Of a stretch of DNA of 64,000 nucleotides, positions 7,480 to 53,512 are shown in pieces (the first letter of the stretch is position 1; each line of letters opens with the position of its first letter). The notes under the pieces are model-generated. The model was not told the DNA's origin and did no database searches. It saw only the letters and a program-made list of their open reading frames with translations. The stretch is from the NCBI GenBank assembly GCA_965637545.1, contig OZ281499.1, positions 10,168,001 through 10,232,000 on the forward strand. The letters run 5' to 3'. Source of the DNA: Phallusia mammillata (Eukaryota). A program made the translations under genes and the position numbers.

Positions 7480-10400
7480 ATGTACGAAAACGTCGCAAGC
7501 GTGCAAAGCAGAGGTTCCATAGGTAAGGGTTTGTTGACAAAAACAGACAGAAAGACTTAACTTTGTTTGTTAGATTTTGAAAGCGAATCCGGAAAGCAAA
7601 CTTCACACGAGTCAGGCATTTTTGCACAACTATTAATAACTTTACTGCTGACAGTTCTTGCGGTTGCCATCAGCGTTGGATTCGGAATCGAAATGGTATT
7701 TTAATTTGTTATCTGGCTATAAGGATTTTTTCATTTATTTTTTATGCTTGTTTTAGAAAATTTTCATTAAGGGGTTAGTGCCGTTAAAAAGATGATCACA
7801 AACTTTTTCAACCAATAATCAAGATTAATTAAGCTTATTAGTCAAAAACATAACCCCTTGAAACACGTATTTAGAGTAGGTGTAAAACTGTGTTCCAAAT
7901 CTTCACTGTTCCCCATTAGGTGGAAATACAGAGAGTGGAAGAGATGTCTATATCAAGTGTTGAAGGTATACAGTGTATATCGTAAAATAATTGTCTATAA
8001 GCAGCATATTTTACAAACATTCAGATTATTCCTATATTTTAAAGATTTTCACCAAATCGAGTCCGGCTCTTGCACTAGCCCAACATTTAAAGATTGCAAA
8101 GACGCCTTAAGTCAAGGTTACAAATTCTCAGGCCGTTTTACAATTAAACCCAATGCCAACACTTCGTCCTTTCAGGTGATCTTTCTTTGTTTGCTTGTAC
8201 GTTCATTTGGTGCTATATATATTTTTTGATTTCAGGTATATTGCGACATGTCTTCTGATAGTGGTGGTGGTTGGACGCTGGTAGCTTCAATTCACGAAGA
8301 CGATGTATGGAGCTTAGGTTCCGGAGATATGTGGACATCTGGTTGGTTTTGAAATGTTTTCAAGTAATTTAAACTAAACTATTGTGATAATGCAGCGTAC
8401 GACAACTGGTTTAATCTGCTAACGTTTGGCAAACTGGAAGATGTAACTAGTGCAGATTTTAAAAGCAAGGCCTTGTACGCTCTTAATGTAAGTACAACAA
8501 AAACATTTTCTTTGTATAACTATCTCTACCTTAACTACCTTAGTTGTGTTGTTTGTTGCAAACTGTCCAAACTGTCATCACATAAACGTTTGCTGCAATC
8601 AAACTCAAGGATATAAAATGCAATAATAACTTATTACAAGATAATAGTGTACAGAAACCATTGGTTTGTGGTGCATTAACTCATCAATACAGTTTTCGCA
8701 GGCCTCGGACATGATGGTATGGCATGTGCCTAATGATCTGGGACTATCATCAATTTCAAACGGTGCATTCTTCAAATATCACACAACAAACGGTTTTCTT
8801 CAAAAATATGGATCGAATCTACAAAGTTTGTTTACGCAATACTTTCCCTTAACCCGACTTAGCAGTGAATGTCCAGACAACTTTACCAGTCATCCCGAAA
8901 GTAAATGCGCTCTTAATTCAGACATATTTCAAAAAGTGTCAGATTGTGTGCAGGAAAATGACTGGGACAACCTTTGGCGCCGTCCATGGGACGAAAACGA
9001 TCCGAGTCCAGTTTATGAATTGGATAAGGTGCGTTAATTTTGTACATCTGGCAATGTTAGCGACCGAAAACAATCCTGATCTTGCGCAGATGACCCTTCA
9101 GTTAAATTCGCAAAAGACAATGAATATAAACGAGACAGGAAGTTACAGGTTGGTCATAAATCTACTTAATTTTCTCGTTTACTTTCGTATCACTGTCCTT
9201 TCATATTACTGACCAAGTAAATAAATTGTGTATTCATTGTACACCAAATTTCCGTCTATTTTCTTACTCTTATTCTTGTAGCGTTCCGGGTTTCAACTCA
9301 ATCTTTGCTGCATCACACACAACAAGCCACGTTGCCAGCAATGTAGTTTGGATTCCGTTGCAACGCAACGCTGTTGATGTCAATGTCAAGGTTCGTGAAT
9401 GATGGTTGAACAGTACCAAGCGAAATATGGTTTGTTTCAACTTATCAGGCTAAGCCACATCATTTTGAGTTGCGCTGATTTTTAGGAGGGTGGGGGAAGT
9501 AAAATAAGCGTGTTTGGTCTACAGTGGTTCTCAAACTTTTTTTAGTTGCGACGCCATTGGAAAAGTTTTTCTGGACTTGCGACGCACCAGCAAATAAAAG
9601 TTAATGATGAAACTTATTATTAAAGTTGTGTTTATTGATACAACACCAAATGCCACGAAACGAAACTATTCTGCGACGCCCTTGAAAAACTGAAACGACG
9701 CACCAGGGCGTCGCGACGCACAGTTCGAGAACTACTGGTCTAGGACAATAAATAAGTAATTACTATTATGGGTACAAATTATGATGCTCTATTTTCGAAA
9801 TCATAGTACGCCAGGCCTAATGAAGGCGTTATACCGAATCAGCCAATCACCAAGGATTCCCATATGGCAAGGCGTAGATTAGAAAAATCTGAATTTCTAC
9901 CTTACGCCTTGCCATAAAGGACTGCTTGGTGACCGGTGATTTGGTATAACGCTTTCATTTCGCTCCCTACAGTAGCAGTTTTTCCGTGTTTACTGTTGTC
10001 CAGGGGCGGCTCGTGCTAGGGTGCTGCGGAGCTGCAGCACCCCCTAGATATTTTTACTTAATACACCTACCATAATATTACAAATAGCTTTCATTATTTT
10101 TATTTTTTTTATTCCTTAGCAATATATAATAAGCATAATTTCCGACCTAATCACCTTTTTTTTTCATTAAATTTTTTTTTTTGGAAACACTAATGTATAT
10201 CTATGCTGGAACTGCAGCTCCAGTTTTCTGACGTTTCGTGACGTTTCATGACGTTTTGCGGTTCTGCGCATGCGCACTTTGAAAAGCTACATGCTGGGCG
10301 AAATAGGAGCCAGGGTGCTGCGGCTCGCGCAGCTCCACCAATCACGTAGCGTGTGACCTGGGCACCCGGAAGTAGTTGTCTGTTCCGCGTTTATTGTGTG

Positions 10401-13400
10401 CCAAAGCAAATCACGTGTACCATCAGGTTCGACAATGAGTACAGTACGACAGTTATTCTTTTTTAATCATTTTTACAGTTTTTGATTGAAAGGTTAATCA
10501 TGGCTTTTCAAGATTCTAATTCGGTGACTGTAAGTGAGCTTCAGCAACTTAAGATTTCGCAGTTATCAAGTGCTGAAAAGGTAAGTATAAAGAAAAAAGG
10601 GCGTCCAACGCCTGATATTCAACTTTGTCAGCCAGGAATGAGCCACAACAAGAAATGTATACGCAGATTTAATTCTGAATGGTATCAAAAGAAAAAATGG
10701 CTTTGTGGTTGTGAAGTTAAAAATGTACTGTTCTGTTTTCCATGTTTGCTGTTTGGAGGTGATGAAAAATGCTGGACAAAAAATGGTTTTACAAATGTAG
10801 CCAAAATAGGTGAGAAAGTAGAAAAACATGAAAAGTCAAAGAAGCATGTGGACAATGATGTTTCACTTTCACTTTTGGGAACTGTAAATATTAAGGAAAA
10901 ACTTAGTGAGGCGTATATAGACTTTCAATTATTGAACACAACAAAAAAGTGGAAAAAAATCGTGAAATTTTGTCCAAAATAATAGACTGCATTTTGTTCT
11001 GTGGAAACTTTGAAACTCCCTTACGTGGACATGATGAAAAAGGTGAGTATTGATATAATGGACATGTACTGTTTGTCTAAACAGTAGCTGCTAAATTGCT
11101 TCACAGGAAGTGTTTCTTAAGAATGAACATTCTACAGACAAGATAGTATAGTGACCACCAAGCACATCCTATTGTTGACAAAGAAAAGCTAAGTACTGAA
11201 ATGAAAATGTTTCTGTAGATCTGATGTTCATGATTACTTTGAAAATAATGTAGATGATGTTTTGACAAGTGAAATTACTAGGATGAAAAATCCTTTTTGC
11301 TGTTTCCATGAGTCCTTCAAAGGCAAAACAGTTTGGATGCAAACCTTTGTTAGGAACACCATTATTTCCAAAAGACTTGCACTTGCAGTGCTAGTACTAC
11401 TAAATAGAAAAACAGTTTCTCAGTTGTCATTTGGAATCAAGGAAGAAGCTATCAATTATCATGCCCAAACTATAACTTTATGATTCATTTTGGTTGTAAA
11501 AAGGAAGCACAAGGTTTAATAATATGGTTTAAATTTAAGTGAGAGTGTTGTAAATTTTAAAGCTTGAAGGAGTTTTGCACTTAAAAAAAGCAATCATAAG
11601 CTATTTGCCAGCAAATAAAGCAGCAATTATAGCAGTTAAAAATCTGAAAGACAAATAATAGTCTGTAAACAAAAATTCCAAAAAAAGATGTTAAAATAAA
11701 CAAGTTCTGACACAAATGTAAAGTGGTTGTTAAATTTGTCAGTTATGATACCAATAAACAGCTGTATGGCTAGTTTTTTGTGTGACAATTATAATCTGTG
11801 AAGTGTCATATAATATGTTGAAAACGCTGACTGTGACCATAAGGTTACTTAAATGAAACATGGCCATTTTTTTAAATGTTGTCGAACTGAAATACTTCGA
11901 CCTTTTTCGAATCATTACTTTTTTTTCTATATTCTTGTTGTGTTTTACCGTATTTACAACCGCTTAGTTTCGAGTCTGTGTCACGTGTGTTTTTGTTCCA
12001 CATTATTACTACATGTTATGGTGTTTATCCGTCGCTGTGCAAGTAAACAAAATACACAAATGATATCGTCTGGTCTGGTGTTTACACTCGTGTACATTAT
12101 TGCGTAACAAAAATTACGTCACAATGGAGTTTCTAATTAAGATTAGTATTACTTGTTTTTCTACACAAAACAATGGCTAGAAAACTATAAATGTAGGTTT
12201 TCTATATATTGCCAACTTATATATGTTCAATAAAGGCTAAAATTTTGAGCAGCACCCCCACAAATTTTAGGCACGAGCCGCCACTGCTGTTGTCTACATA
12301 CAATATAATCCAAAACCTAATGTATCAAACCCATAGTCAAACAGAATCAATCGTTTATAACAGTTTTCCCAGAATATTGGTAAAATATATATTCTGTTAA
12401 AATACTGTGTACAACGGCTGATTCTCTTCGGCCTAGGGTTTTATACATTGGGTTTTGGATTACGTTGGTCTGTATGGACGCTTCAGGACTGACCCCAGTT
12501 ATGAATTTATGTTCATCTTAGCTTCATTTTTGATTTTGATACAGGTTGCTTGGGGTCGCAAGTCCGCAATTTTAACTGATTCAGTACTTTCCAAAGGCTA
12601 TAACATAAGTTTTGGAGCAATGTGTGATTACAATTATTGCAACGTTCTCTTTACCATCACCAATTCCGTTGTAAGTTCTTAGTGTATTTGTATTTGTTAA
12701 TGGCAATATTTTTTTTGTTAAACTACTCCCATTCCTCTTGTTGCGTCTTATCTTTTTTATCCGGAGTGGGGACAATGCCTGAATGCATTGTGCTCACAAT
12801 GAGTCCGCCTTTTGAATACCTGTCTCATTGCAAGTCTTCTGGATCATTTTATACATTTATTTTATGATTTGTGCCAAGTTAAAGACTTGAATTTGCTACA
12901 ACCCGTCTCGTTTAATTGGTTTGGAGCAATTTTATTAAAGTTTTATGTGTGGGAAACATAAGTGGTTGAGGCGGTACTAGCTCCTTGGAAAGAAAGCTCA
13001 CGTAAAGAGCGTGCTAGTTTGATCCAGCTGTGACAAATCATACCAATAGAAAAACAAGTTTTTGCACACCATTTGTGTTTATCCAACAGAAATGGGGAAT
13101 GACATCTTCTTCCAATTCTCAATCATCAAAGTTTTACCAGAACAACGAACAAAGAGTTGTTGAAGTTCAAATCAGCAATATGACCAGGGCAACGCTGATT
13201 GGCTATGTAGTGTTTCAAAAGTAATTCTGTATGTTATATGTTAGTCAGTTATTTAAATTTCGATAACAAAATAAAACAACACTCAGAATATATACCAAGG
13301 ACCGACACGAATGGGATTGGATTCGTGTTCTAGAATATTTGCCGTGGTGCTTTGGTAAGAAGTGTGTTATTATCAAAACTATTGAAGTATAGCTTAAAAC

Positions 13401-14598
13401 CTTTTCGCTCAGATCATGTTCTAACGAAACGATACAAGATCCCTCCAAGTTTGTCTGTCCCGGTTAAGTTTATCAAAGGAAAAATGGATTACAACCAATC
13501 AGATGTTACTCCTGGATTCATTGAGTTCCGAAAGTATGGCAGATTTGAATATCCGTATTCGATATGTCCCGGAATAAGGTGACTTCAGTGACAGAAATGT
13601 TAGTGGGTGTGGGAAATGGTAATGCTTTTTACATTTAACTAGTCGTAAGTTCAAACCAAAATGTGATTTTGAAACCGAATGATGAATATGATTAGGTTGA
13701 AAAACGATACAGACCCTTCCTTGTATTGTATTGGCGGAATGACATACGCAACATGGTATTCATCTCATGACTTCTATGGTGATTTTTCTGGTTAGTCGTT
13801 TTGGTTTCTTCGCAGTGCAGTAAAATATCTAATTATAATGCACTATGCATGCACCAATTTGCATGATCAAAAACCTCCACGACACGAGCATTTCCGGGAC
13901 TCCAGCTCCACCTACCACGCTATACAGGCTCAGCGGTGAGCTTGTTGAAAGTCGAATCACAAGCACCGTTGCTTGCCTTATATGCTGCCCATGTCAGCTT
14001 GTTGGTAGTTGGGGATGGCCAGATTGACCAGTTATCAACCTGTGTCTGGGAAACTATGATTTATAAATTAGTGTGCAGTTCTCGCTGTTCTGCATGAACA
14101 CTTCAGCGCAGATCCCAGTTATGATTTTGAGGCTATATTTCAAATGCTTCATTGTGTTTTTAAATAGGCTGCCTCAGTATTCTTTTGGGAAAATCATCAA
14201 AAATGGTTTTGGCCAGCACCAAACCTTTTCATAGTCGCATTTGCTTCATATGCTGCAACATGCAATTTGCAAATCACTGTAAAAGCGTTTTACTGCCAAT
14301 AAATCTCTAAAACTCAATCTCAACTGAACTCAAATATTAAATGCTGTGTTTTGAAAGCTCGGAATCTACTTACAAATTTCGCTTCCAAATGCTTTACGCT
14401 GGTGCATATTTTAAAATTTTAAATTCAGATGTTTTAGGTAACTCAATATTTAGCACATTTTTTCAATTTAAAATTTTGGAATATCGTGTTTTCACAGCTT
14501 GGTACCAACTTGTAGCTCACAGAGTAAAGCGGGCCAACTCAACCACAGGAGGTGACGTCACCGATTTGACTTCCACTCTTCTACTGTTTTATCGCTAA
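7480..14598 (+). CDS. Copy A: membrane-anchored intelectin-like protein with a large insert, 15 exons, 573 aa, apparently intact
   Basis: Exons 7480-7522, 7574-7695, 7920-7965, 8045-8175, 8236-8341, 8396-8487, 8702-9028, 9090-9148, 9282-9390, 12545-12670, 13090-13220, 13287-13354, 13413-13578, 13696-13790, 14498-14598. All introns GT-AG; total 1722 nt, open frame. Motifs [52 protein letters not shown] and LLLFYR* match intelectin. Confidence 0.85.
9522..9737. mobile_element. hAT-like MITE in intron 9 of copy A
   Basis: TIRs cagtggttctcaaac / gttcgagaactactg. Internal gcgacgc repeats. TSD only partial. Confidence 0.65.
9819..9959. mobile_element. Fold-back MITE (family also at 23455-23935 and 27725-27841)
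   Basis: The two halves are reverse complements: aatgaaggcgttataccgaatc..caccaag..ccatatggcaaggcgtag versus ctacgccttgccata..cttggtgacc..ggtataacgctttcatt. Confidence 0.7.
10001..12286 (+). mobile_element. Internally deleted hAT DNA transposon with a ZnF-TTF / ZMYM1-like transposase fragment
   Basis: TIRs caggggcggctcgtgc / gcacgagccgccactg. Perfect 8-bp TSD ctgttgtc (9993-10000, 12287-12294). ORF 10482-10982 carries RRFNSEWY..WL....NVLFCFPCLLFG...W...GF....KHEKSKKH. Confidence 0.9.
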
Positions 14599-15438: not shown

Positions 15439-19341
<3,903 letters not shown>

Positions 19342-19868: not shown

Positions 19869-22800
19869 ATCTTCATTTGTGTAGCGCGTTTCTTTTTTGA
19901 CTAATTCGTGTGTTTCAATCCCAGACGAAAAAATGACTTATTTAAGGTTGATTTTTATTCATACACGCGAATAGTTTTGAAACACTTTTTATGAATGTTC
20001 TCTTGCATTAGTTTTACTTGATGATCGGTACAATTTATAAAATGTCGGAAATGAAATCTGTTTTAAAAAGTTCTGTTTGACAATCTTTATCTCCAACATG
20101 GTTTTTACCATTATTTTCCAGTCTTTAATTACTGATTAAGCTACTTAACTTTTGCCACAAATGGTGCAAAGCAAAAATATTCTGAACAGTTAAATGCAGG
20201 CAGTTTAGCTTCAGTTTATTTTAAACGCGAATCATCAAATACAAAAGCCAACAAAACACGTGTGCGAAAGAAAAAGGCAAACGTCACGCATGGAAAAATA
20301 AGCTGAAAATTTTGAAAACTGAATCGTAGAAAATAGTGCGGTTACAACACGACGAAATTTTGTTGATGCTTGTATTTAGATATGTAGCGATTACGTCATA
20401 CTTTGTGCAAACTTTGCAATAGTTGTTTACCAAATTAGCTCGTTTTACTTGCTAGAATGCTCGAGCTGATAATAACAACTGTTTTATGTGCACCTGGGTG
20501 CAAAGTAATTTGTTGTGTATGATTGTTATTTAACCTTGCCTGATGGTTGAATGCTTCGGGACATCTAAAGATAACAAGGACACAATCATAAAAATTAATA
20601 CATTTCAGCGTAGATAAATGAAAAGTAAGAAATCTATTTTCTCAACGATTTTCCTCAATATTTTGGCAGTAACAATTTTTAACTGAACATTATTTTGATG
20701 GAATGGTTTTTAAAGCGCATTTCAGTTGCAATGAGTATAACTACCTTCATAAAAAGTTTCCTGCTTTTGCCACAAAAAGCACACGTTAAAAAATATTATA
20801 CTCCTAACATTTTGTCAGACTTACTCACTTTATATTAATATTTAGCGATAAAACAACAGAAGAGTGGAAGTCAAATCGGTGACATCTTCTCCTGTGGTGG
20901 AGTTAGCGCGCTTTACTTGGTGAGCTGGAAGTAGGCTCCAAGCTGTAAAAACACAATACCAAAAATTTGTAATGAAAAGGTATTGAGGTATTGAGTTACT
21001 TAATAAGCTTATATTATCTGAATAAAATTTTTAAATATGCACCAGCTTTAAACATTTTGATGCGAAATTTGTATATTGGTTCATTAGGAAGCAAAAGCGA
21101 CTGCGGATGAACCCTTTAGGTTACGAAAACTAATTTTTGGTTTTTGGAACAAAAATGTTACGCAATCGAATCCGAAAATAAATGAAGCTACATGTTACTA
21201 ACAAAACTGTCAGAGCTTGTTTTCTCATAATGCATCGCGATATATAGACGCAAAAATATTGCTATCTTTAGTGTACTTGTTTTTTTAATTTATTTCGCGA
21301 CAATCAAAACAAAAATAAGACAAACCAGAAAAATCACGACAGCCCATTGGAGGTATAAACCATCTTGTCGTTGTCACTCCGCCAATACAATGGTAGGATC
21401 TGTATTGTTTTTCAACCTAAGCAGACTCGTTTTTCAGCGTCGTAGTTTACTTTTTAGTTTTAACTTACAACATGTTAAATGTAGAAAGTATTTACATTTT
21501 TCACACTTATTAACATTTCTGTCACTGAAATTACCTTATTCCGGGACACATCGGAAACGGATATTCGTATTGGCCATACTTTCTGAACTCACTGAATCCA
21601 GGAGTAACTTCTGATTGATTGTAATCCATTTTTCCTTTCGTAAACTTAACCGGAACAGACAAACTAGGTGGGGCCTTGTATCGATTTATGAAAGGGTGTT
21701 CTGAGGAATAATGTTTAAAGCTACTCTTTAACAGTTTTAATAGTAATACACGTCTTACCAAAGCACGTCGGTATAAACTGCTGAGCACGAACCCAATCAT
21801 CTAAGTCTAAAGACTGAACATATGTTCTGGAATATTTTTTTCATTATCGAAAATGACTAATATACAAAATGTAAAATTACCGTTGAAGTATCATATAGCC
21901 AATCAACGTTGCCTTAGTCGTGTTGGTGATTTGAACTTCAACGATTCCTTGCTCATTGTTTTGGTAAAACTTTGCTGATTGGGAATTGGAAGAAGATATC
22001 CTTCCCCATTTCTGTTGGACATAAAAGGGATATGCAAAAACTTGATTTTCTATCGGTTGGCACCATTAAATTCGTTCAGCTGAGTCAAACTAGCATCAGT
22101 TTGCTGTGAGGCAGGCTGCCAAACATCACGGGAATTCAGTAACAATTTATCATAAAATAGCGACATATTTAAATTCAGATCAAATATGTACTTACGATGG
22201 AATTGGTGACGGTAAAGAGAACGTGGCAATTACCGCACAGAGCTCCAAAACTTGCGTTATAGCCTAATTGTCACGATAATTTTTTAATATGTACTTAGTA
22301 TAGCGGACTTGGGACGCCTTTCCCAAGCAATCTGAAACAAAATCAAAGATTAAGCACATAACTTCTGCGTATACTAATTATTGCCTTATTATTATTTGTT
22401 AATTTATTTTGACGTAAAGTGTGACAACCGTTTTCCGGTAATAATCGCTCAATAACAGGTCTTTTTAAGTGATAAAACCTAGAAATAAAAATCTTATTTA
22501 CACATCTAAATGGTCGGGCAGACCAAAAACTCTTGTAGAGCTTCTATCTCATAAAGAATTGGTGGAAAAATGTTTATTACCTAACCCCTAAAAACCCCAA
22601 AGAAAAACACCAATTTACTGTAAACCCATTAATATCAACATTTTAATATCAACAGGGTTATGTTGCAAAGGAACCCAAACCATAGTGCTGGCGACTTTTT
22701 TTTGTTTTTTGTAATACAGCTAAGATCGAGTTGAAACCCGGAACGCTACAAAAATAGTGGCAAGTACATAAACGAAAAATTGTTTGGATTAAATCAAAAC

Positions 22801-23454
22801 AACACATATATCATTTATCCACAAGTTAACACAAACTTAAGTAGATTTAATAACCAACCTGTAATTTCCCGTCTTGTTTATATTTATAGGTTTTAGCGCA
22901 TTTAACTGAAAGGTCATCTGTAAACGACAAGATTGTTAACGGTTGTAAACAGTGTCACTTTTTTCAAATTAACTTACCTTATCGAATCCATAAACTGGGG
23001 GCGGATAATTCTTGTCACCTGGACCTTGCCAAAGCCAGTCCCAGTTATATTCCTGCACACAGTCGGCCATTTTTCCAAATATGTATGAATTAAGAGGGCA
23101 TTCACTTTCAAGATAGGTAGAAAAGCTGTCCGGACATTTAGTGCTAATACGGGACAATGGAAAGTATTGCGTAAAGAAAGTTGGAAGATTCGATCCATAT
23201 TTCTGAAGAAATCCGTTTGTTGTGTGATATTTGAAAAATGCACCACTCGAAATTGTAGGTAATGCAAGATAATTTGGCACATGCCATATCATCAAGTCTG
23301 AAGCCTGGGAAAGGTGTATGGATTAGTTGTAATCGAATGCAAACCAAATCGATCTTATGCATAACTAAGATAAATACATTTATACCGGGATCAGCCCTGA
23401 ATCGTCGATGCAGACCTGAGATCATGCAATTCTCATCTTTAAATCATGGTACCC

Positions 23455-23935
23455 CAGGCTTTATGAAGGCGTAATACCGAATCGAGCTGATGTCTTACGC
23501 ATAGCAAGGCACAGACTAAAATAACTAGCCTGCTGTGGGATTCGAACCAACGACCTTCTTCTTTTCGGCACTCGACTTCAATAGGCCTTAAGTACAATGA
23601 TTTGTGAATAAGTATGGTGTGTTCGCTGGTAAGCTTCGGGATTGATCCCAGTATGATTGTACTTATCTTAGCAGATCACTGGTCGAACTGGCGTTCATAT
23701 ACTAGGATGCTGACATGAGCAGCATACAAGGCCAGTAACAGTGCTTGTGATTCCACTTTCAGTGGTTTCACTATTGAGCATGTGTAGCTCAGTTGGTAAA
23801 GCGACTCCCGGCAATATTCGTACTGTTGGTTCAAATCCCACCGCAGGCTAGTTTTTTTTATATGTTCCTTGTCATATGGGAATTTTTGGGCGACCGGTTT
23901 AAATCGATGTGACGCTTTTAATGGGCCTGGCGCGT
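23455..23935. mobile_element. Fold-back MITE with tRNA-derived inner arms (intron 6 of copy C)
   Basis: Outer arms match the 9819 family. Inside, a degenerate tRNA-like unit at 23778-23850 (A box tagctcagttggta, B box ggttcaaatcc, followed by a T-run) and an inverted 3-prime half at 23525-23551. Confidence 0.6.
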
Positions 23936-24110
23936 CATGGTAATTTTTTGTTGAACTTACATTTAGAGCATACAATGCTTTGCTTTTGTAATCTCCACTA
24001 GTTGCTTGTTCAAGTGTGCCAAACGTTTTCATGTTGAACCAATTGTCGAATTCTGCAATATTGATCACAACAAATAGTTAGTCCAATTACACAAAACGAA
24101 TTATATAAAC

Positions 24111-24864
24111 CAGGGGTTCCCAACCTGTGGTACGCGTACCACTAGTGGTACGCGAAGGCTTTTCAGGTGGTACGCGAGTAGCTTCCGCTTTTTTCACGTA
24201 AACCTGAATTTACAACTTTATATTTTGTTTATCTGGTTTTGTTTTTCAAAAAAATCTCCAAGGTTCTTCTTATTGTTACGTAACTATTCCTGTTGTTTCG
24301 TATCATTACGATCTTCAAAATACAGGTTATGTCAATTGTCAACAAGAAGCACAGTTGCTTTGAAACGCCGTAGAATGCTGTGAGACAGTGGGCATTAATT
24401 ATATGTCAAATGATTGCCCTTGATAGATATCATCTACTATTTTATAGCTTAAGCTACAAATAGCGTTGAATAATGCTAGTGTTGTAAGCTAAAATAGATC
24501 AGGATAAAATGTTCAATAACGGTATGAAGAGGTAGTTTATGCTTCGTAGTAATGCATAGGAATGTGAGCAGGTATTTTCCGTCACGATGATCATCAAGTC
24601 AAAAATTTGAAACCGACTATAGGTGCGCACGGAAATGACTTTTGATGCGCTGCCAGTTTACACCTCGCATCGACCAATTGGTGGACAGTAAACAAAAATA
24701 TCATTAAATTTCGTTGTGGTGCTTTAGTGTTATTTTAGTAGGCCAATATTCTTCTTCTGAATACAATATGATTCGATCAAATTAGTTGTTCTGCAAGAAG
24801 TGGTACGCGTAGCAGTACAGAGCGTCCAAGTGGTACGAGATCGTAAAAAGGTTGGGAACCCCTG
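24111..24864. mobile_element. hAT-type MITE in intron 5 of copy C
   Basis: TIRs caggggttcccaacct / aggttgggaacccctg. Perfect 8-bp TSD atataaac. Confidence 0.9.
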
Positions 24865-25584
24865 ATATAAACAAACCAACCAGGCGACAACGACCCATGA
24901 CCACATGTCTACTGTCTCACATTCACTAGCTATATCTTCGTTGTGAATTGAAGCCACCAACGTCCGACCACCCCCATCAGACGACATGTCACAATATACC
25001 TAAAAACAAAAAAGATTACCAAATAACCGTGCAAGCAAACTAACAAACAATACATGAAAGGACGAAGTGTATGCATTGGGTTTAATAGTGATAAGGTCTG
25101 AGATGTTGTAGCCTTGTCTCAAGGCGTCTTTGCAATCTTTAAATATTTGGCTGGGGCAAGAGCCGAAATCAATTTGTTGATATTTTTCTAAACAATGATC
25201 TGATTGATTATAAAATATGCTGCTCACAGACAGCATTACTGAACTGAACCACAGTCCAATTACTTTACAACATACACCTTTAACACTTGAGGTAGACTTT
25301 CCTTCTTCTCTTTGTCTTTTCATCTAATGGTGAATAAGGAAGATTTGAAACACAGTTTTACACCTGACCTATTCCAAATATTCGTATGTTACAAAAGATA
25401 AGTTCCTTAAATAATCTGTTTCAACTGTATTGTTATACTGTATTTTTGGTTACAACAATTTTGTGTTCATTTTTTAACAGTACACACAATTTTTGCAGTC
25501 TTGTACTTTTTGGTCAAAACATAAAAACGTATTAAAATACCATTCTGATTCCGAAACCAACGTTGATGGCAACCGCAAGAACAA

Positions 25585-30398: not shown

Positions 30399-32216
30399 GT
30401 CTATGTAGTAGACATTAGCATTTTTTAATGTTAACGGAAGTAAAGTGATCTGTCGGTGCTGTGTTAAACATGAATCCAAAGCCCTATTGTATTTTGAAGT
30501 TTTTCAGGCGAAGAAGTCCAGTAATAGCACAAAACCAACATTTAAAGACTGTAACGACGCTTTAAGTCAAGGATACAACATCACAGGGCTACTGACCATT
30601 AAACCTGATGCCAACACATCGTCGTTTCAGGTGCGTACCTTCGTTCAATTGTTCGTTAGTTCATTTTTTCTTCTTTTCAGGTCTATTGCGACATGTCGTC
30701 TAATAGTGGTGGTGGTTGGACGTTGGTGGCTTCCATTCACAATGGCGATGGTTCGGAATATTGCGGTTCCGGAGATATGTGGTCAAAAACCCCATCAGGT
30801 TCCGGTGGGTTTTAAATGGTTTCATATGATGTGAAAAAAATTCCTTATTAGTGTTAGTGTACAATACTACAGCATTCGAGAACTGGTTGAATCTGAAAAC
30901 GTTTGGCAGGCCAGAAGGTGCCACTGGACAAGATTATAAAAGCAAAGCCTTGTACGCTGTCAACGTGAGTACAATAAAAACACTTTCTCACAGACTAAAT
31001 AGGTTTTTTTCCCCACAGTCGTTAATGCTTGTGTAATCAGACTCATGGTTCTAAAACTGTATAAAATTAAACTGTATAAAAATGTACTAGGATTACCACC
31101 GTTTCATAGGCTTCAGACATGATGATCTGGCACGTGCCAAATGGTCTTAACTTATCAGCAATTACAAGCGGAGCATTCTTCAAATATCACACAACAAACG
31201 GATTTCTTCAAAAATATGGATCTAATCTGCGCAGTTTGTTTACGCAGTACTTTCTCTTAGCCAGGAGTAGCCCTAAATGTCCGGATAACATTTCCGGTCA
31301 TCCTGTTGGTGAATGCTCCCTTGATTCAAAGATATTTGGAAAAATATGGGAATGTGTGAAGTACAATGATTGGTACAACTTGTGGCCGGGTCGAAGATCG
31401 TTCCTTGGTCGTTCGTTTGACCCACTTCCAATTGTTGAAGTCGATAAAGTGCGTAACTTTGTGAATTTGACACAATTTAAAGCTGAATACTCTTTTCTAA
31501 CTTCATGTAGATGACCATTAGGTTTGATACGCAAAAGACCATGAATATAAACAAGACTGGAAATTACAGGTAGGTCAATAAATTTCGATTATATTTTTTT
31601 AGTTTATTATTGTTGTAAGTGAAGAGTTCAGTACATAATGTAAAACCATTATTGAAAAGAGAGGAATTCTGTATCATTATATTGTGTAACTATCATTGAA
31701 AAGACTGGGAATTAAGTATCATTATGCGTATTTATCATTAAAAAGAGGGGAATTCTGGATCGTTATGTGCAACCGTCATTGAAAATAGTGTCTCTTTAAT
31801 CAACTGGAAAGAAATTGTCGTTTGTAAAATTTACGTAAACTAATATTCCTGTAGTGTTCCTGGCTTCAAGTCAATCTTAGCTGAAATGCAAGTTATTCCA
31901 TGGACACTCGGATCTACTCTGGTTTGGATTCCGTTGCCACACATCGATGTTGATGTTGATGTTAAGGTAAGTTTCTTATGAGCGTACACTATTAGGCGAA
32001 ATTGATTTTTCTCACTTATCAAGCTATATTTTTCGTGTTGCTGCGTAATTCGTCACTATGTAATTACTCACGTTTAACTTTTCTTCGTTTGTTACAAGGC
32101 AATAGTAGAAACAAGTTGTGAAAACGTAAACAGTGTTGCCGATTTGGGTAGTTCTTAAAAACATTTATATATGTTTGTTCTTTGTTTGATTAGAATCACA
32201 TATTAAGTTTAATAAC

Positions 32217-33065
32217 ATGTTCAAAGCTTTTGTTCATCTGCTTGGGTCAATTTTTTTAACCTACGCGAGAATAGAAACAACACTACTTTGCAAAATGGAT
32301 GCGGTAAAAGCGAATAAAACTAAACACTTAATACAAGAAATTATTTGGCCTGTTTTTCCTATGTCGCTAAAGGTATCAGGAAAGGAAAGAAACCTGCAAC
32401 CCAATGCTTGCGTAGTTTATAAACGGCTAGCTACACTGCAAGGTTTATTAACCAACTAGGCGCATTTGCGTTTGATTGGAGAAATTCGGGTACAGCAGGA
32501 AGGTCCTATCCATGCCAACACTGTGGCCTTGTGGGCATTTCAGCAACTTCAAATCAATGGTGCCCGATACCACCACGATCAACACACCGGGTAGTGAAAT
32601 GCGTCTCAAACCAACCGTTAGTTGCCGCGATTACGGTATTTATGTGGCTAAATGCATTGAATGTAATGCTTGCTATGTCGGCCAAACCAATAATTAGCAG
32701 TGAAAGAAATGACAAAGCAGCTTTATCGCGTCATTACGCCAGCAAACACATTAATATTTTGAAAAGGAAACCTGACATCGCCACATGTTTCCGTATTACC
32801 TTTGTGGAAAGCCCTAAAAAAGAAAATTTAGACACGTGCGAGGCCAAATGGCTAAAAATATTGGACGCTAAAATAAACTTTTGAGGTTGGTTCAGGTAGC
32901 TTTGGCAGTTAGTAACAGCAATCCCTTGTTTTATTGTTATACTGTTTTACTGCTTTTATTTTATTTATTTTGGCGTGTTTGTTTTAACACTCATTTTTAT
33001 ATCGATTTGTATTTCGATTTCCAGTTACTGATGATGCCATACATAGGCGAAATATATATTCTTTT
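32217..33065 (+). mobile_element. 5-prime-truncated Penelope-like retroelement (GIY-YIG endonuclease fragment and 3-prime region)
   Basis: CRDYGIYVAKCIECNACYVGQTN followed, after a frameshift, by HYASKH..ITFVESP..ENLDTCEAKWLKILDAKIN. Downstream CTGATGA..GAAA core at 33028-33052. Confidence 0.8.
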
Positions 33066-36000
33066 ATTTGAACCGACTGATTCTGTTTTACCAAGGATTT
33101 TATCGTCCATTGGTTTTACTGTATTACAAGAAATTATATTCGTACCTTAAACCTAGATAAAATCGAATTATCACGTCAAGGATTGACCTTAGATTTCAAT
33201 ACAGGTCACTTGGGGTTCATTTGGCGAGGACGTAGAGTTTGTTAGCAGTTCGTTGTATCACAATGACTATGACATACGATTTGGAGCTATGTGTGGTGGC
33301 CCATATTGCAAAGTTCTCTTTACTGTCACGAATTCCGTCGTAAGTAATTAATGTGTATTTATTTTTGGATAAGCGTAGTTTCTAATCACTTTTTATTTCC
33401 CCAATCCTGCTTTTGTATTTTTGCCTAAAGCCCTGTGTCCTACACACAAATTAAGCTATGGTGGTTCCTAGTTTGATTAGACTATGAAAGGCCTATATTG
33501 CAGCAGTGCAAGGCAATGGAGAACCAAGTTTTTGTACACTACTTGTTTTTTCTTGTAGAACTTGGGAACAAGATTTTCGTCAAATTCCCAATCAACGAAG
33601 TTTTACCAAAAGGACAACCTAACAAGCGTCGAAGTTCAAATAAAAAACATGAATAAGGCAACGCTGATAGGATATGCGATTGTGCACCGGTAATGCATTT
33701 TTCATTGAATTGTCAGTCATTTTGAATTCGAGATATAAAGAGATCTAACATGAATAGAATATTCGCAAGCCCCGAGAGCTATCCCCGAGACGGTGACGAT
33801 TGGATTCGTGTTCTTAAATATCTGCCCAGTTGCTTTGGTGAGTGAACATAGCATGTATATCAGTAACAGAATACAATGGCGTTTAAACCTTGTCGCTTAT
33901 AGATAAAGCTCTATTAGGAAGACATAAAGGCATTCCAAGTTTATCTGTTCCCGTCAAGTTTATCAAAGGATACATGAATTACAACCAACCTGATGTTACT
34001 CCTGGATTCATTGAGTTCAGAAAATATGGGAGTGTCGAATATCCATATCCGATTTGTCCTGGAGTAAGGTAAATTAAAATGGGAGAAATGCACCACTTGT
34101 CTCGTTAAAAATGTCAGATATCCTAACGGATATGGTCTTTATAACTTTAGGTTGGAAAACAATGCTGACCCTTCATTGTTTTGCATTGGCGGAATATCAA
34201 GTGGATCATTACATTCAGCAAAAGGCTGCGGTGATTTTTCTGGTATGTCGTATTTACGTTAAATTGCTGATCAATTGCTGTTCAAATGCTAAATTTGGAT
34301 AAGGGTTGTCACAATAATTGTCTGACAATTTCGTCTGAATTGAAATTCGGGAACAAAACGAAAATTTAATTTTATACAACACAACACTTTTAAGACTTAA
34401 TCAACATACAAATATCGCCCATCAAGTTACAAAAGCAATCTTTGTGGATTTTTAAACATGTCATGTCTTTATTCCTCAAATATATTTACCTAAAGCAATT
34501 CAATACCTCATTATTTCCTATTGAATTGATTTGCACAACCAATACGCAACATATTGTTTTTGACAGCTTGGGCCAGACTTGAAGCTCACAAAGAAAAGCG
34601 GACAAATTCCACCACAAAATATGACGTTACTGATTTGACCTCGACGCTTTTGTTGTTTTATCGTTAACTTGAACTCTTATACTGATCTTTTGTAGCTGTT
34701 TTTTTCCATAACCTAAGTTTGTAGATTTGATTTATGTAGGTTGCCAAGAAGGAAAATGTATAAATTTTATTTGTTTCAAATGTGGCTATTTCATAAGTTG
34801 CCAAATATACAATATCTACACATATATACAATACGTTTGTCCAATTTTTTTTAAGTATTAAGATTTTGCGGACCCATTTGTTACATGTGAAGGTATAATT
34901 AGTTCAGTTGCACGTTAGGACATAAAATGTCATTTGCAAAAACATGCCAGTTCCGGGTGTTCCATTTGGTATTGAATTGTAGGACAACTGCTTTAAGTTT
35001 CTTTTTTAATTTAATGAACAGTAAACTGTAATTGGTCCCTGGTGTTGTGCAGGAAATGTGTATAGTTTAATATATTTGTGACTGGGATAAAATTGCTTTA
35101 GGTAGATTTTTAAATGCTTAGGTTTCCCTACGAAATATACGATTCATTTCTTTAAATGTATTGTCGTCATAACGTATTTAACGAAAACATGAAATATAAA
35201 TCGAAAAAATATTTTCTTAATTTGCCTTTATTGAACAGTATGATATATAACTTTCTTACTTTTCCAACAACAGGTTTACTTGTAGGCTGTGAAAAGTATT
35301 TATGTGTTGATATGTTTCGCAAAACGATTGTGACATACAACCGGCCATTCTCGAAGCTTCATATATAGTTAATTTGCAATTGTTAAACGTTTGTGCCAGC
35401 AAAAACCTGATGTGCATCCCTAAAGCACATTATTGATAATAATTCGTGACGTAAATAAATAGTCACAAAATTACGTCATTACCAAAGCCACATTGTTGAT
35501 GACGCGTTATAGGCGCTTTGCACGTACACACAACGTTTTTTCGGTTAATGTTTCGGTCGTTTGCCGAAGATGGATGTAAACACCACAGCCGAATAAACTA
35601 CAGGTTCCAATAATGAGATGCAGTTTGTTAAATATTCTAAATAACATAGAAAATTATCCACATTCTTGGATAGTGGTAAATGGTGATTGGATTAATGTTT
35701 TGAAATAGATGCCCCCCTTACTTTGGTCAATGTCGCTCAGGTGGCTTTTTAACGACATGATACAAAAACTTTTCTAGTTCGACTGTTCCCGTAAAGTTTG
35801 TCAATCAATTCTCTTTCTCAATTTATTTAGTTTAAAAAAATATGCAACGTGTGGATAGTCTTATCCGATGTGTCCCACAGAAAAGTAAAGTTGGGTGAGA
35901 CAAACGTTATTGGATGGGAGAAATGTTAATGTCCACCAGTGTCAACTCATTGTTTCCAAATATTTATTTACCTCTGCTACATGTTTAGCAAATATACAAA

Positions 36001-37011: not shown

Positions 37012-41514
<4,503 letters not shown>

Positions 41515-42845: not shown

Positions 42846-45800
42846 TTAACGATAAAACAGCAGAAGCGTTGACGTCAAATCAGTGACGTCACCTCCTGTC
42901 GTGGAATTGGCCCGCTTTTCTTTATGAGCTGCAAGTTGGTCCCAAGCTGTCAAAGCATGATTATTCTTGTTATTTCAGATCAAATAGTGTTAGTAGTTAG
43001 TTCTTTGGAATGATTTGCGGGAAAAAAAACGAAGCTAGCCAATCAACGAAACAAAAGAACTGCTGTTAAATCTAACGTCTTTTATGTAAAGTAAGTTATA
43101 TCTTTATGTCTATAATGATGGGATGAGCATTTGCAATACAGAATTTTCTTTTTAGGTCTATTTGATCTGCAATGTCCTTTATTTGACCTAGATTAAGTGG
43201 CCGAAACATTTGGTGTAATTCAGATGTTACAGCTAATCAGTACATACCAGAAAAATCACCACATCTTCGCCTGTAGGAATACGAGCTACCAGTTGTCAAT
43301 CCGCCAATACAATGCAGGGAAGGGTCTGCATTGCCATCCAACCTTAAACAAATCAGATTAGAGAATTGACATCGTCTGAGTGTTTGATTGGTTATTAACT
43401 TTTTCTTTTTGTGTTTGGATAAAAAAGAATCAATAAGTTTTTTATACTTGTAAGTAACGCACCTGATTCCTGGACATATAGGATAAGGATACCCGGAACT
43501 GCCGTATTTTCGGAACTCAATGAAACCAGGAGTAACATCCGATTCGTAAAAGTCCATATTTCCTTTGATAAAACTAGCAGGAACCGACAGACTTGGAAGG
43601 TCTTTGTATTCAGTTGTTTGAAAGTCATCTGTTGGTAAAAGAGTTTTAAAGCAGTGCTCTGTTATAACTAATAGACATAATATGGACCCTTACCAAAGCA
43701 GCTAGGAATATTATCAAGAATCTGACCCCAGTCGTAATTGTTAGGAGTTGAGGCATATTTTCTAAGATAATAAAGTTTTTGTTTTCAGCTAAATTAATTG
43801 TATTGTTGTTAGAATTGAAACAAAGTTACCTTTGAAATATTGTATAACCGAATAAGGTGGCCCGATTCATATGTTGTATTCGTGCTTCAATATGTGTTTG
43901 ATTGTTTACTTGGTAAAAACTCGTTGTTTCGGTAAAGGTAGAAGTAACCTGTCCTCCCCAATTCTAAAAAATAATATGTATGGATTTTGTACGTTAATAA
44001 TTTTAAAGATTTTGTACGTTTTATTTTTCGCATTTTCGCATCTAAATTTTTAGCACACCTTAGCTGAACTAAACAAACCTATGAGCCATTTTGTGAGTCT
44101 TTACTTTACCAATACACCTAAAAGAGTGTTTTAAACCAGGGAGTCGAACCGCTTGTCATATGGGTTCAGGTTCGGTTCGGGTTCACTTGGTTTTGTTTTT
44201 AAGGGTTCGGGTTTGGTTCAGGTTTTTCAAAATGTATATTTTCGGGTTCGGGTTTTGTTCCGATTCGGGCAAATTATGCGGTCCGAACCGGTTTGCGGTT
44301 TTTAAACCGGTTCAAATTTTTATTCATGTCAATTTAACTCTAACCATCATCTACCTGGCCTTATCAAACTCCAAAAGAATTTTGCCCGTGCACTGTAATT
44401 TTTGACACGCCCTATAAGTGTTATCTCGCGTATTAGTTTTGAATAAAATCACAACATATAAAACAGACTGCATATTTTACTGGTTCGGTTCCGGTTCGGG
44501 TCCAACGCCAAACAAAAAGTAGGGTTCAACTCCGGTTCGGGTTTTTAGAAAATCGTAATTAGCGGTTCGGGTTCGGTTCGGGTTTAATGAAATAAACCGC
44601 TCAAACCGGTTCGCGGGTTCGGGTTCAGTTCCAGTTCGACTCCCTGTTTTAAACTCCCAATAAAGTTGCGTCCTTAAAAAAAGATTCAATAGTTAGTTAG
44701 TCACTTACATTGGAATTGGTGATGGTGAAAAGAACCTTACAGTGCGAGTCACCACACTGTGCTCCAAATCTTATGTCATATGTTCCCTGTGATGTTGAGC
44801 TCCGCCAAAACCTCATGTTTCTACCAAACGTTCCCCAATCAACCTTCAAAAGCAGCTTTATAAAAAAATGGAAACAAGCCAAACATCATCTAGTGCTTTG
44901 TATTTCAATTTTAATCCTCAGCAAAGGCTTTTATCAGATAATTAAGCACCTATACAGAACATAGTAAGCGATGTATAAATACGGTATGTTCTACCAAAGA
45001 CCGCCATCAATGTCAAATGAAATAGCTTGCCGAAGTATACATTAGTAAATATTCCCTTGATAGTAAATTTTATAGACGAACTATACCTTCACATTGATAT
45101 CGTCTGCAGTGTATGGTATCGGAATCCAAACAAGTGTGGTGGCAACTCTGGATGTTTTTCTCATTGCCACTTCAATCTGTTTAGCACCAGGGACACTATA
45201 AAATAACAACTTATTCTGCAACCTTAATTAAAAATCGAATACCTGTCAGAGAAGACGGTCTATTTCCTATGAAAAAAGATTACACGAGACAAAATAATGA
45301 AGAAATCTTTACCGACTTGAAATTTCCCGTTCTGTTAATGCTTATCGCCCTATGTGTATTGAATTTGATTATCATCTGTACGAAATTAAGATTGCGTTAT
45401 GTGGTACCCTTACAATTCGTTCACAAAAAATACAACCCACGTTGTCGCTTCCTGTAATTCGCACAGGATTTACTCGTTCAGATCGTTGAAACGACCTGCG
45501 CCAAATATCACTCCAATTAATTTTCTGCACACACCCTATCGCTTTCTCGGCCATACCTAAACAACAGATTTAATTATTGAACTGGGAGAAATCTATTTTA
45601 AGAAAACCCTCTTCTTGACCTGTTGGGCTGTATCGTGTCATAGGAAAGTGTTGCGTAAACAAAGTTTGAAGATTCGATCCATATTTCTGAAGAAATCCGT
45701 TTGTTGTATGATATTTGAAGAATGCGCCACTCGAAATTACTGGCAAACCAAGATCGTTTGGCACGTGCCAAATCATTATGTCTGAGGCCTGCAAAACCAG

Positions 45801-46910
45801 TTTTTTAAAATGTTTACGTGCCAACCATTGCTCATGCAAATGTCACGACAGGCTTCAAAAAGGTTAAAAAAACTTTAAAAATGGTTTATTTGAACTTACA
45901 TTGAGAGCGTACAAAGCTTTGCTTTTGTAGTCCTCTCCGGTTACATCTTGCAAATCGCCAAACGATTTCATGTTAAACCAGTTGTCATATGCTGTAAAAT
46001 GCTACAAAACGTAAAACAAAAATTGAAAAAAACGTATAATTTACAAACTGACCGGAAGCCGACGATTCCTTTGACCATTTGTCTTTGTAATTGCAGCTAC
46101 TACTGATGCCGTCTTCGTGAACTGAAGCCACGAGCGTCCAACCACCGCCACCGGACGACATGTCGCAAAATACCTAATATTTATGTTTAGCTCGACTGAG
46201 GCGAAATAACAATCAAATTTTTGTACCTGAAACTCGGGAGTGTATTCATTGGGCTTAATGGTGAGAAGACCTGTGACGTTGTAGCCTTGACTTAAAGCGT
46301 CTTTGCAGTCCTTAAATATTGGCTTGCTGCAAAATTTCGATTTCACTGGCCGTTGAACTACAAAAAGTATATGCCTTCAATGTTACGGTTAAAAATACTT
46401 TATTACACACTTGCTTTACCTCCAATACTTGTCATTGCCTCTGGCTTTGGTCTTGGGGTTTCCATCTAACAGTACACGAAAATATTTGGAAACGCGTTCT
46501 CATATTAACACTTTCAAAGACTTAGTATGCTTTTGTATTAAAAAATGTTTTTTTCTGATGTAATATAATGTGTTGCAGGAAAAAAAATCGTTTCTAATCT
46601 GAATGATAACATGTTGGTCACAAATATATAGCAAAACATGCCGTATTGGAAATATAAAAATAGCAAAACATGCCGTATTATATCAACAAAACCAAAATTA
46701 CCATTTGAATTCCAAATCCAACGCTAATAGCAACCACAAGAACTGTCAGCAGCAAAATGATAAGAAGAAGTGAAAAAACGCCCGACTCGCGCGAATTGCC
46801 CTTCCCAGAGCTGCGTGCTGAAATGAACAGTAATCATGTAAAAAAGTATCAGATAATAATAACTTAACAATGATACCTGTACGATGTTCACCTCTGCCGT
46901 TTTCAAACAT
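42846..46910 (-). CDS. Copy F: intelectin-like gene with insert, 16 exons, apparently intact
   Basis: Starts MFENGRGEHRTARSSGKGNSRESGVFSLLLIILLLTVLVVAISVGFGIQM. All exons recovered in phase; ends LLFYR*. Confidence 0.8.
44137..44646. mobile_element. MITE rich in GGTTCGG repeats in copy F intron 10, absent from copy G
   Basis: TIRs cagggagtcgaac / gttcgactccctg. Perfect TSD ttttaaac. Empty site aagagtgttttgaactcc at ~51101-51118 in G. Confidence 0.9.
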
Positions 46911-52800: not shown

Positions 52801-53512
52801 CAGCTACTACTGATGTCATCTTCGTGAACTGAAGCCACCAACGTCCAACCACCACCACCGGACGACATGTCGCAAAATACCTAATACTTATGTTTAGCTC
52901 GACTGAGGCGAAATAACAATCAAATTTTTGTACCTGAAACTCGGAAGTGTAGTCATTGGGTTTAATAGTGAGAAGACCTGTGATGTTGTAGCCTTGACTT
53001 AAAGCGTCTTTGCAGTCCTTAAATATTGGCTTGCTGCAAAATCCGGATTTCACTGGCTGTTGAACTACAAAATGTATAGGTCATTAAAGTCACGGTTAAT
53101 GAAAATGTCACTTCAGACCCTTGCTTTACCTCGCATACTCGTCATCGCCTTTGATTTTGGTCTTGGTGTTTCCATCTAATATTAAACAAATATACTTTGA
53201 AAGTCGATCTAATATTTACACCTTTGAAAAAATATTAGTTTTTGTATTGATAATTGTTTATCTTAGCACAACTTACCGTTTTATTCAAACAAAAACTAAA
53301 ATTACCATTTGAATTCCGAATCCAACACTTATGGCAATCACAAGAACTGTCAGCAGCAAAATGATCAGAAGAAGTGAAAAAATGCCCGACTCGCGCGAAC
53401 TGCCCCTTCCAGAGCTGCGTGCTGAAATTAACAGTAATCGTGAAAAAGTATCAGATTATATGACCGCAACAATGATACCTGTACGATGTTCGCCTCTTCC
53501 GTTTTCAAACAT
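49836..53512 (-). CDS. Copy G: intelectin-like gene with insert, 16 exons, apparently intact
   Basis: Starts MFENGRGEHRTARSSGRGSSRESGIFSLLLIILLLTVLVIAISVGFGIQM. Close paralog of F; all exons in phase; ends LLFYR*. Confidence 0.8.

Follow-up and report, generated by a model that had tools for sequence, protein, structure and literature searches.

A domain with viral relatives nested in the intelectin fold of a Phallusia mammillata gene array

The usual view of intelectins is that of compact lectins with a single domain, which are secreted and recognize microbial glycans via one calcium site. A stretch of 64,000 nucleotides from the ascidian Phallusia mammillata (assembly GCA_965637545.1, contig OZ281499.1, positions 10,168,001 to 10,232,000 of the forward strand; referred to as the window) contains intelectin-like genes that do not fit this picture, and a preliminary description made from its sequence had proposed an unrecognized domain inside the intelectin fold of one of them (here copy A). 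This raises the questions of what the additional domain is, where else it occurs, and what became of the lectin around it. The answer that we consider highly probable as a whole is that the genes carry a nested domain from a family with viral members, in part of them as a phase 1-1 exon cassette, that the window holds a strongly derived array of such genes, and that the domain would have been acquired by an intelectin that may now serve as a cell-surface receptor.

A second domain within the intelectin fold

Searches by tblastn together with exon models identified nine intelectin-like paralogues (copies A to I) on both strands of the window (0 N, G+C ~36%), and the insert was present in 9/9 (Table 1). 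Queries for the window type were taken either from the exons or from the deposited protein of copy D; the latter (CAB3262805.1 of P. mammillata, P0001) differs from our copy D model by one mismatch and two small splice-site differences. Another P. mammillata record (CAB3257373.1, P0095) showed 92% identity to copy H. After splicing, the exons of copy A formed an uninterrupted open reading frame (ORF) encoding a tail, a transmembrane helix, a short stalk, and an intelectin domain with the terminal sequence LLLFYR. The N-terminal tail of 30 residues is followed by a hydrophobic helix of 19-23 residues (mean Kyte-Doolittle value 2.55, approximately aa 31-53, exon 7574-7695). Thus, a type II membrane anchor is indicated rather than the signal peptide of secreted intelectins.

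Both the fibrinogen-like N-terminal part and the intelectin-specific part of the fold were identified, the former giving only a weak Fibrinogen_C match for the N-terminal exons of copy A in Pfam. In phmmer/HMMER comparisons with chains of the Protein Data Bank (PDB), residues 4-118 of copy D aligned to residues ~74-193 of human ITLN1 and residues 375-471 to ~221-312. Between the two aligned stretches lie 256 residues of copy D (119-374), compared with 27 residues in the human protein (~194-220, including K198-C199-W200-T201); the comparison with a short human loop at the insertion site, made in the preliminary description, holds. The spacing between the WHV and PGF motifs was 312 residues versus ~83, and the phmmer alignments of exon 8702-9028 with 7e1e, 4wmq, and XEEL ended at the edge of the insert. 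In short, where the intelectins of known structure (ITLN1, 4wmq; Xenopus XEEL, 4wmo; lamprey LSVL, 7e1e) have a loop of 27 residues, a domain of 220-256 aa splits the fold in the window copies. In a structural model, the two intelectin halves reassemble around the insert with essentially all of the residues outside it; the possibility named in the preliminary description that they could not do so is not borne out.

In copy A, the insert begins right behind FPLTR (8858) and ends with LPWCF (13353) and the G of a split codon (13354); over the window copies it comprises 237 alignment columns. Every copy has a phase-1 intron at the 3' edge of the insert. At the 5' edge, a phase-1 intron of 58-63 nt is present in copies E-I, whose insert is thus a six-exon 1-1 cassette. 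The module of the Clavelina lepadiformis gene (D216-Q445) is likewise flanked by two phase-1 introns. At this 5' edge, copies A-D lack an intron and contain ~17-20 extra residues with two Cys (ECPDNF...C.L.S.IF; 8858-8950 in copy A); this difference could reflect intron loss or exonization dividing the array into two subfamilies. The six exons assigned to the insert by the preliminary description hold for copies E-I. In copy A, whose insert-region exons extend from 8702-9028 to 13413-13578 (Table 1), the insert starts inside exon 8702-9028 and draws on five whole exons and parts of two. The splice acceptor previously placed at ~13439, ahead of the C-terminal half, had to be corrected to 13413 as demanded by the frame, which adds ten residues (DHVLTKRYKI) ahead of PPSL.

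The insert is coding and constrained. In 11 pairs evaluated by the Nei-Gojobori method, its identity ranged from 42 to 80% with omega values of 0.18-0.56, whereas the intelectin halves showed 68-93% identity and omega values of 0.16-0.29; according to these values, evolution of the insert is two- to threefold faster than that of the halves. The continuous frame with GT-AG introns, the recurrence in nine paralogues, and omega values below 1 bear out the extra domain initially proposed from the sequence and go far beyond what chance would produce. In an alignment of the seven intact paralogues, the conserved motifs listed at that stage were all recovered, namely C.Q..W..(L/I)W, MT(I/L).FN.Q, LVWIP.P, VKV.WG, FGA.C...YC.VLF..TN, ATL.GY, and W..(V/I)L...P.CF, as well as VPG, which reads VTG or VSG in two copies. 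Four conserved Cys were gained in the window-type insert.

The insert of C. lepadiformis alone, modelled with an alignment of 130 rows, gave a predicted local distance difference test score (pLDDT) of 88.1 and a predicted template modelling score (pTM) of 0.90. The model consists of an N-terminal helix (residues 6-15), 12 strands, and a C-terminal helix (216-230). According to its DSSP string and sequence, three acidic/glycine motifs are predicted to lie in loops at strand ends. The copy D insert was modelled with the same order of elements (helix 139-153, strands 181-326, helix 341-358) at lower confidence, so that the arrangement of a helix, ~12 strands, and a helix is common to both models. 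On the basis of these models, the insert is a real, separately folding β-sandwich domain of 220-240 aa; the earlier suggestions of a β-rich fold and of a loop replaced by a whole domain are both supported by the predicted structure. Foldseek with the Clavelina insert revealed no match in the PDB (template modelling (TM) score ≤0.31), and a shape search of the ESM Atlas gave no match. In BFVD, three confident matches were obtained (TM scores of 0.72 with an E-value of 7e-11, 0.61, and 0.59), all to uncharacterized viral proteins.

Relatives of the insert in ascidians and viruses

An exhaustive phmmer search with exon 8702-9028 retrieved intelectins with a spacing of 312-355 residues between WHV and PGFIQF, compared with ~83 in canonical intelectins. 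They derive from Styela clava, Ciona intestinalis, Ciona savignyi, C. lepadiformis, and Phallusia and are recorded as "uncharacterized" or under generic names; the unstudied split intelectins include Ciona LOC100185179, Styela LOC120342979, LOC120328249, and LOC120335122, Clavelina CAK8696819.1, and Phallusia CAB3257377.1. A hidden Markov model of the window inserts matched the central region of other ascidian split intelectins, and a full alignment revealed a homologous insert at a single insertion site in all of them. The nested architecture is thus old and common to ascidians of all three orders. A literature search retrieved no publication on split or nested-domain intelectins.

The other ascidian split intelectins share nested architecture, insertion site, and homologous insert with the window copies, and some of them are anchored by a transmembrane helix; others possess a collagen stalk and no membrane anchor. 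Two further split intelectins (P0012 at L005 and P0016 at L004) carry collagen-repeat stalks, are ficolin-like, and are presumably secreted. They originate from marine RNA-type contigs (JGI 3300018678; Logan SRR27980839) with ORFs uninterrupted through the insert and were placed among the tunicate sequences in the tree. The 854-aa protein P0030 of S. clava (XP_039273929.1) has a spacing of 529 residues between WHV and PGF, which is consistent with two tandem modules in one intelectin.

Relatives outside tunicates were identified with a profile built from 13 tunicate inserts (A2), which was searched against 5.8 billion proteins with lengths of 0.55-1.75 times that of the profile; the large protein searches were in part word-indexed. 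The profile matched four proteins of 294-380 aa (P0112-P0115) at E-values of 1e-12 to 1e-14 with 86% of the profile covered, and these share the motifs of the tunicate inserts from end to end. A combined tunicate and viral profile retrieved at least 182 proteins; among the matches listed, nearly all had ~294 aa, and the metagenome contigs that encode them reach 186 kb in length. The tunicate and viral profiles were aligned by hhalign at 99.3% (E-value 1e-20) over 213 columns.

Three contigs with the domain gene represent large-phage gene contexts. The neighbouring genes encode DNA polymerase, DnaB, a RecA-like protein, 5'-3' exonuclease, and ribonucleotide reductase, as well as QueC, QueD, and FolE, the chaperones HSP20 and Cpn10/Cpn60, PhoH, and T4 gp13. 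The search for a free-standing form suggested in the preliminary description was therefore successful, with ~294-aa proteins on large marine phage contigs. On one 114-kb phage contig (L002:4565-9394), the free-standing gene is directly preceded by a cluster of deazaguanine pathway genes (QueD (PTPS)/QueC/GTP cyclohydrolase I/dCTP deaminase) and followed by a gene for a family B DNA polymerase.

In IMG/VR, 52 loci (L006-L057) were found, three of which are in giant-virus metagenome-assembled genomes. In these genomes and some other contigs, the domain is a module of proteins of 589 to >3,400 aa that also contain Laminin_G_3, pentapeptide, Big_2, FG-GAP, and hyaluronate-lyase N-beta (HL_N-beta) domains; the very large giant-virus proteins also possess ConA-like lectin domains. 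The tunicate profile matched these multidomain variants in one piece, whereas the 294-aa phage branch has an extra stretch of ~35 residues. An ORF of at least 3,467 codons from the giant-virus contig GVMAG-M-3300027770-19 (L034:7-10407) carries the domain at approximately residue 2000, along with six Laminin_G_3 domains, pentapeptide repeats, FG-GAP, Big_2, and pentaxin-like domains. This composition is suggestive of a giant adhesin or surface protein.

The phage and giant-virus proteins (P0112-P0230; L006-L057; BFVD entries A0A8S0HZG8 and A0A6J5NIC1) are homologous to the typical tunicate insert over the full length and have the same helix-sandwich-helix layout. None of them is located within an intelectin; they stand alone or are fusions with Laminin_G_3, pentapeptide, or Big_2 domains. 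With exon pieces of the window, the insert of copy D, further tunicate inserts, and the phage proteins as queries, Pfam contained no match to the insert at or near the curated threshold, and PHROGs gave no match on the domain, its sole match covering a Thr/Pro-rich linker of P0113. When a family member from a phage was compared by tblastn with 50,697 deposited phage genomes, no match was obtained, and a pattern-limited scan of 185,579 bacterial and archaeal species, with one genome per species, revealed no relative. The nested domain is thus a member of an unnamed family whose other members are viral as far as found. Its designation as unrecognized stands with regard to Pfam and PHROG families; it is neither an orphan nor specific to this locus, given the ascidian split intelectins and the viral relatives.

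Within this family, the window inserts are strongly derived. Conservation in ≥90% of 117 viral rows and in no fewer than 8/12 typical tunicate inserts defined 26 positions, which include the DGG.DM.D.GN, GADG, DP, and LLS motifs. Copy D retained 8/26 residues, whereas typical tunicate inserts and the other ascidian split intelectins kept 17-26. The residues lost include the DGGxDMFDxGN, GADGxG, and DPS loops; altogether, the typical tunicate motifs Y.Y..., DGGxDMFDxGN, PF..L.WI.N, GADGxG, DPSxCEV.F, W.S, and GYxLLSR were missing from the window copies. In the maximum-likelihood tree, the tunicate inserts all fell on one side of a branch with a support of 100, and the branch of the window clade had a length of ~3.7 substitutions per site. 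A profile of the window inserts alone still matched the other tunicate inserts (89%, E-value 2e-6, 113 columns). A word-indexed search with the copy D insert retrieved two Phallusia proteins only, in line with strong divergence of the window type. This derived form has undergone a lineage-specific tandem expansion, to which the nine type II membrane copies belong.

Ligand site, origin of the domain, and alternative explanations

The remodelling extends to the lectin itself. The residues N260, E262, H263, and E274 of ITLN1 reportedly contribute to the ligand site (Wesener et al., 2015). In copy D they are substituted (N260D, E262S, H263L, E274L), and C259, which adjoins N260, is replaced by Ala, in agreement with the earlier observation that the Cys before NTEH is absent. 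All copies read DPSL(H/F/Y)C at this site, with E262, H263, E274, and Cys259 of intelectins replaced throughout, and W288 is apparently retained. The residue numbering of ITLN1 was confirmed from a published docking table, in which a single interface comprises contacts to residues 196-201 as well as to 260-263, 274, and 297. The replaced loop holds C199, C259 lies next to N260, and both regions belong to this interface, which suggests that the insert is positioned next to the binding face of the lectin, the docking support being indirect.

Taken together, these data suggest that an ancestral tunicate intelectin acquired the cassette in a single event, with a virus as the simplest source. The cassette would have added a second, probably glycan- or metal-binding surface near the lectin's binding face. 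To judge from their sequences, the window proteins may act as cell-surface recognition or adhesion receptors with a specificity off the canonical calcium/diol site, which would then rest on a remodelled composite surface of intelectin and insert. A more far-reaching version, which we regard as doubtful, holds that a glycan- or surface-binding module of a marine virus (a giant virus or large phage) was captured into an intron of a tunicate intelectin, giving rise to a two-headed innate immune receptor, and that Phallusia turned this into a membrane-bound, rapidly diversifying tandem family of receptors in which the binding residues of both the viral module and the lectin were replaced and a new surface was built on the virus-derived scaffold.

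A number of results weigh against the nested viral-type domain and its proposed acquisition. The window-type insert was modelled only moderately (pLDDT 43-80), and the window-only profile did not match the viral family significantly (E-value 0.068); its membership in the family is based on transitive homology, the identical insertion site, and the matching order of secondary structure elements. In the unrooted tree, the tunicate and viral sequences are the two sides of one branch, which does not fix the direction of transfer. In two of the phage contigs, the domain gene is found among replication and metabolism genes, not structural ones. A feature search of the ESM Atlas gave, next to weak leads to viral fragment clusters, hints at cnidarian fragment clusters with a score of 0.90, which is reached by chance in 4-10%, and the searches for cellular homologues were word-indexed or pattern-limited. 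Finally, the exons of copy A had no reads in the public runs examined (four runs from four studies; ~0.2 of the words shared), which matched the repeat in its long intron only.

These results bear differently on the explanations that compete with a nested domain of viral kinship. That the insert is no new kind of domain but a very diverged version of the galactose-mutarotase-like supersandwich, an established carbohydrate-active fold that occurs terminally in GH116, GH65, GH94, and GH36 enzymes and in heparinases, appears rather unlikely: weak matches of this type recurred with the insert part of the whole-protein model, but the supersandwich domains of GH116, GH65, GH94, and heparinase III have no sequence or profile link to the insert, superimpose with a root-mean-square deviation of ~4 Å, and score within the range of unrelated folds. 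We consider it unlikely that the domain was born in animals or has long been resident there, the tunicate insert being ancestral or exon-shuffled and the viruses having taken it over from their hosts. With its phase 1-1 boundaries and several internal introns, the module has the layout typically seen for exons shuffled in animals, and giant viruses frequently take up host genes; the tree, which cannot be rooted, and the cnidarian fragment clusters would also fit such an origin. On the other hand, the named eukaryotic carriers found are all tunicate, with the domain always at one intelectin site, while the viral family shows both great size and diversity, with phage and giant-virus members and with free-standing and fused forms, and the acquisition of animal genes is not normal for phages.

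Even with a viral kinship accepted, the window insert might be a decaying passenger, a relic spacer without a binding role of its own. The loss of 18 of the 26 family-wide positions, omega values above those of the intelectin halves, the lower model confidence, and one copy that is already a pseudogene would fit this idea, which we nevertheless judge quite unlikely in view of omega values well under 1 in 11/11 pairs, the array's own invariant motifs and four conserved Cys across copies with only 42-55% identity, an intact frame in seven copies, and a secondary structure order that matches the confident Clavelina model. An artefact of annotation or splicing, with the extra exons belonging, for example, to another gene or a transposon within an ordinary intelectin intron, is extremely improbable. 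The missing reads for copy A and the transposon-like sequence in its largest intron could be taken that way. The continuous frame with canonical splice sites, a layout repeated in nine paralogues and five species, purifying selection on the insert, and deposited proteins and intron-free RNA contigs of relatives that run uninterrupted through the insert all speak against it; moreover, without the insert exons neither the phase-1 end ...CF G (13354) nor the frame of exon 8702-9028 can be joined to the next exon.

If the viral origin is true, the nested domain represents a domain-level horizontal transfer into an animal immune gene and adds to the few foreign sequences that shaped tunicates. The tunicate genes acquired by horizontal gene transfer (CesA, GH6, rusticalin) are likewise tunicate-wide with non-animal relatives otherwise, but those are whole genes, whereas here only a domain is concerned, which is located inside an immune lectin and has viral relatives. 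The main text of a 2026 survey of horizontally transferred tunicate genes mentions neither intelectin nor lectin nor phage. Throughout the ascidian lineage, a domain for which all relatives found are viral interrupts the intelectin fold, and many of these proteins are membrane-anchored. For an abundant, unnamed family of marine phage and giant-virus proteins, a confidently modelled fold and an animal homologue amenable to experiments are now available. With its degraded canonical sugar site and fast-evolving insert, the tandem array is a candidate for a diversified family of surface receptors.

Individual copies and the long intron of copy A

The positions of the nine genes and their inserts are compiled in Table 1. 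In copy C, frameshifts and a stop were found in the exons matching 9282-9390 and 12545-12670 of copy A, and its GGGW motif is damaged and reads GGGRTL. Copy A alone has lost two Cys kept by the other copies, reading WSLGSGD instead of ..C..GD (8290-8320) and DFYGDFS instead of.CGDFS (13770-13790); by alignment, these correspond to C94 and C280 of ITLN1.

Table 1. Intelectin-like genes of the window and features of copy A (window coordinates)
Feature	Position	Strand	Remarks
Copy A, gene	7480-14598	+	complete gene; 573 codons in 15 exons, GT-AG introns throughout
Copy A, N-terminal intelectin half	8045-8857	+	exons 8045-8175, 8236-8341, 8396-8487, and first 52 codons of 8702-9028; ends FPLTR
Copy A, inserted domain	8858-13354	+	aa 233-453, 221 aa; coding 8858-9028, 9090-9148, 9282-9390, 12545-12670, 13090-13220, 13287-13354
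Copy A, long intron within insert	9391-12544		repeated, transcribed sequence resembling a transposable element
Copy A, C-terminal intelectin half	13413-14598	+	exons 13413-13578, 13696-13790, 14498-14598; ends LLLFYR and stop
Copy B	~15878-18651	-	insert-coding span 16284-17886
Copy C	~21326-25187	-	pseudogene; insert span 21759-23148
Copy D	~30500-34700	+	insert span 31266-33837
Copy E	~37562-41400	+	insert module 38376-40473, six exons; 5' phase-1 intron 38313-38375, phase-1 intron also 3'
Copy F	~43248-46345	-	insert module 43694-45556, flanked by phase-1 introns
Copy G	~50230-53052	-	insert module 50675-52262, flanked by phase-1 introns
Copy H	~55813-59600	+	insert module 56913-58588, flanked by phase-1 introns
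Copy I	from 61786	+	insert module start 62966-64000; gene truncated by window end

The long intron of copy A contains a Cys-rich ORF of 166 codons (10482-10982) without a match to a Pfam family, and a search for inverted repeats in this intron yielded only small palindromes (9819-9959 and 12301-12467). Each of the four public runs had many contigs that contained the intron repeat with 95-99% identity. A transposon is the probable source of the repeat, which is probably transcribed from some place in the genome.

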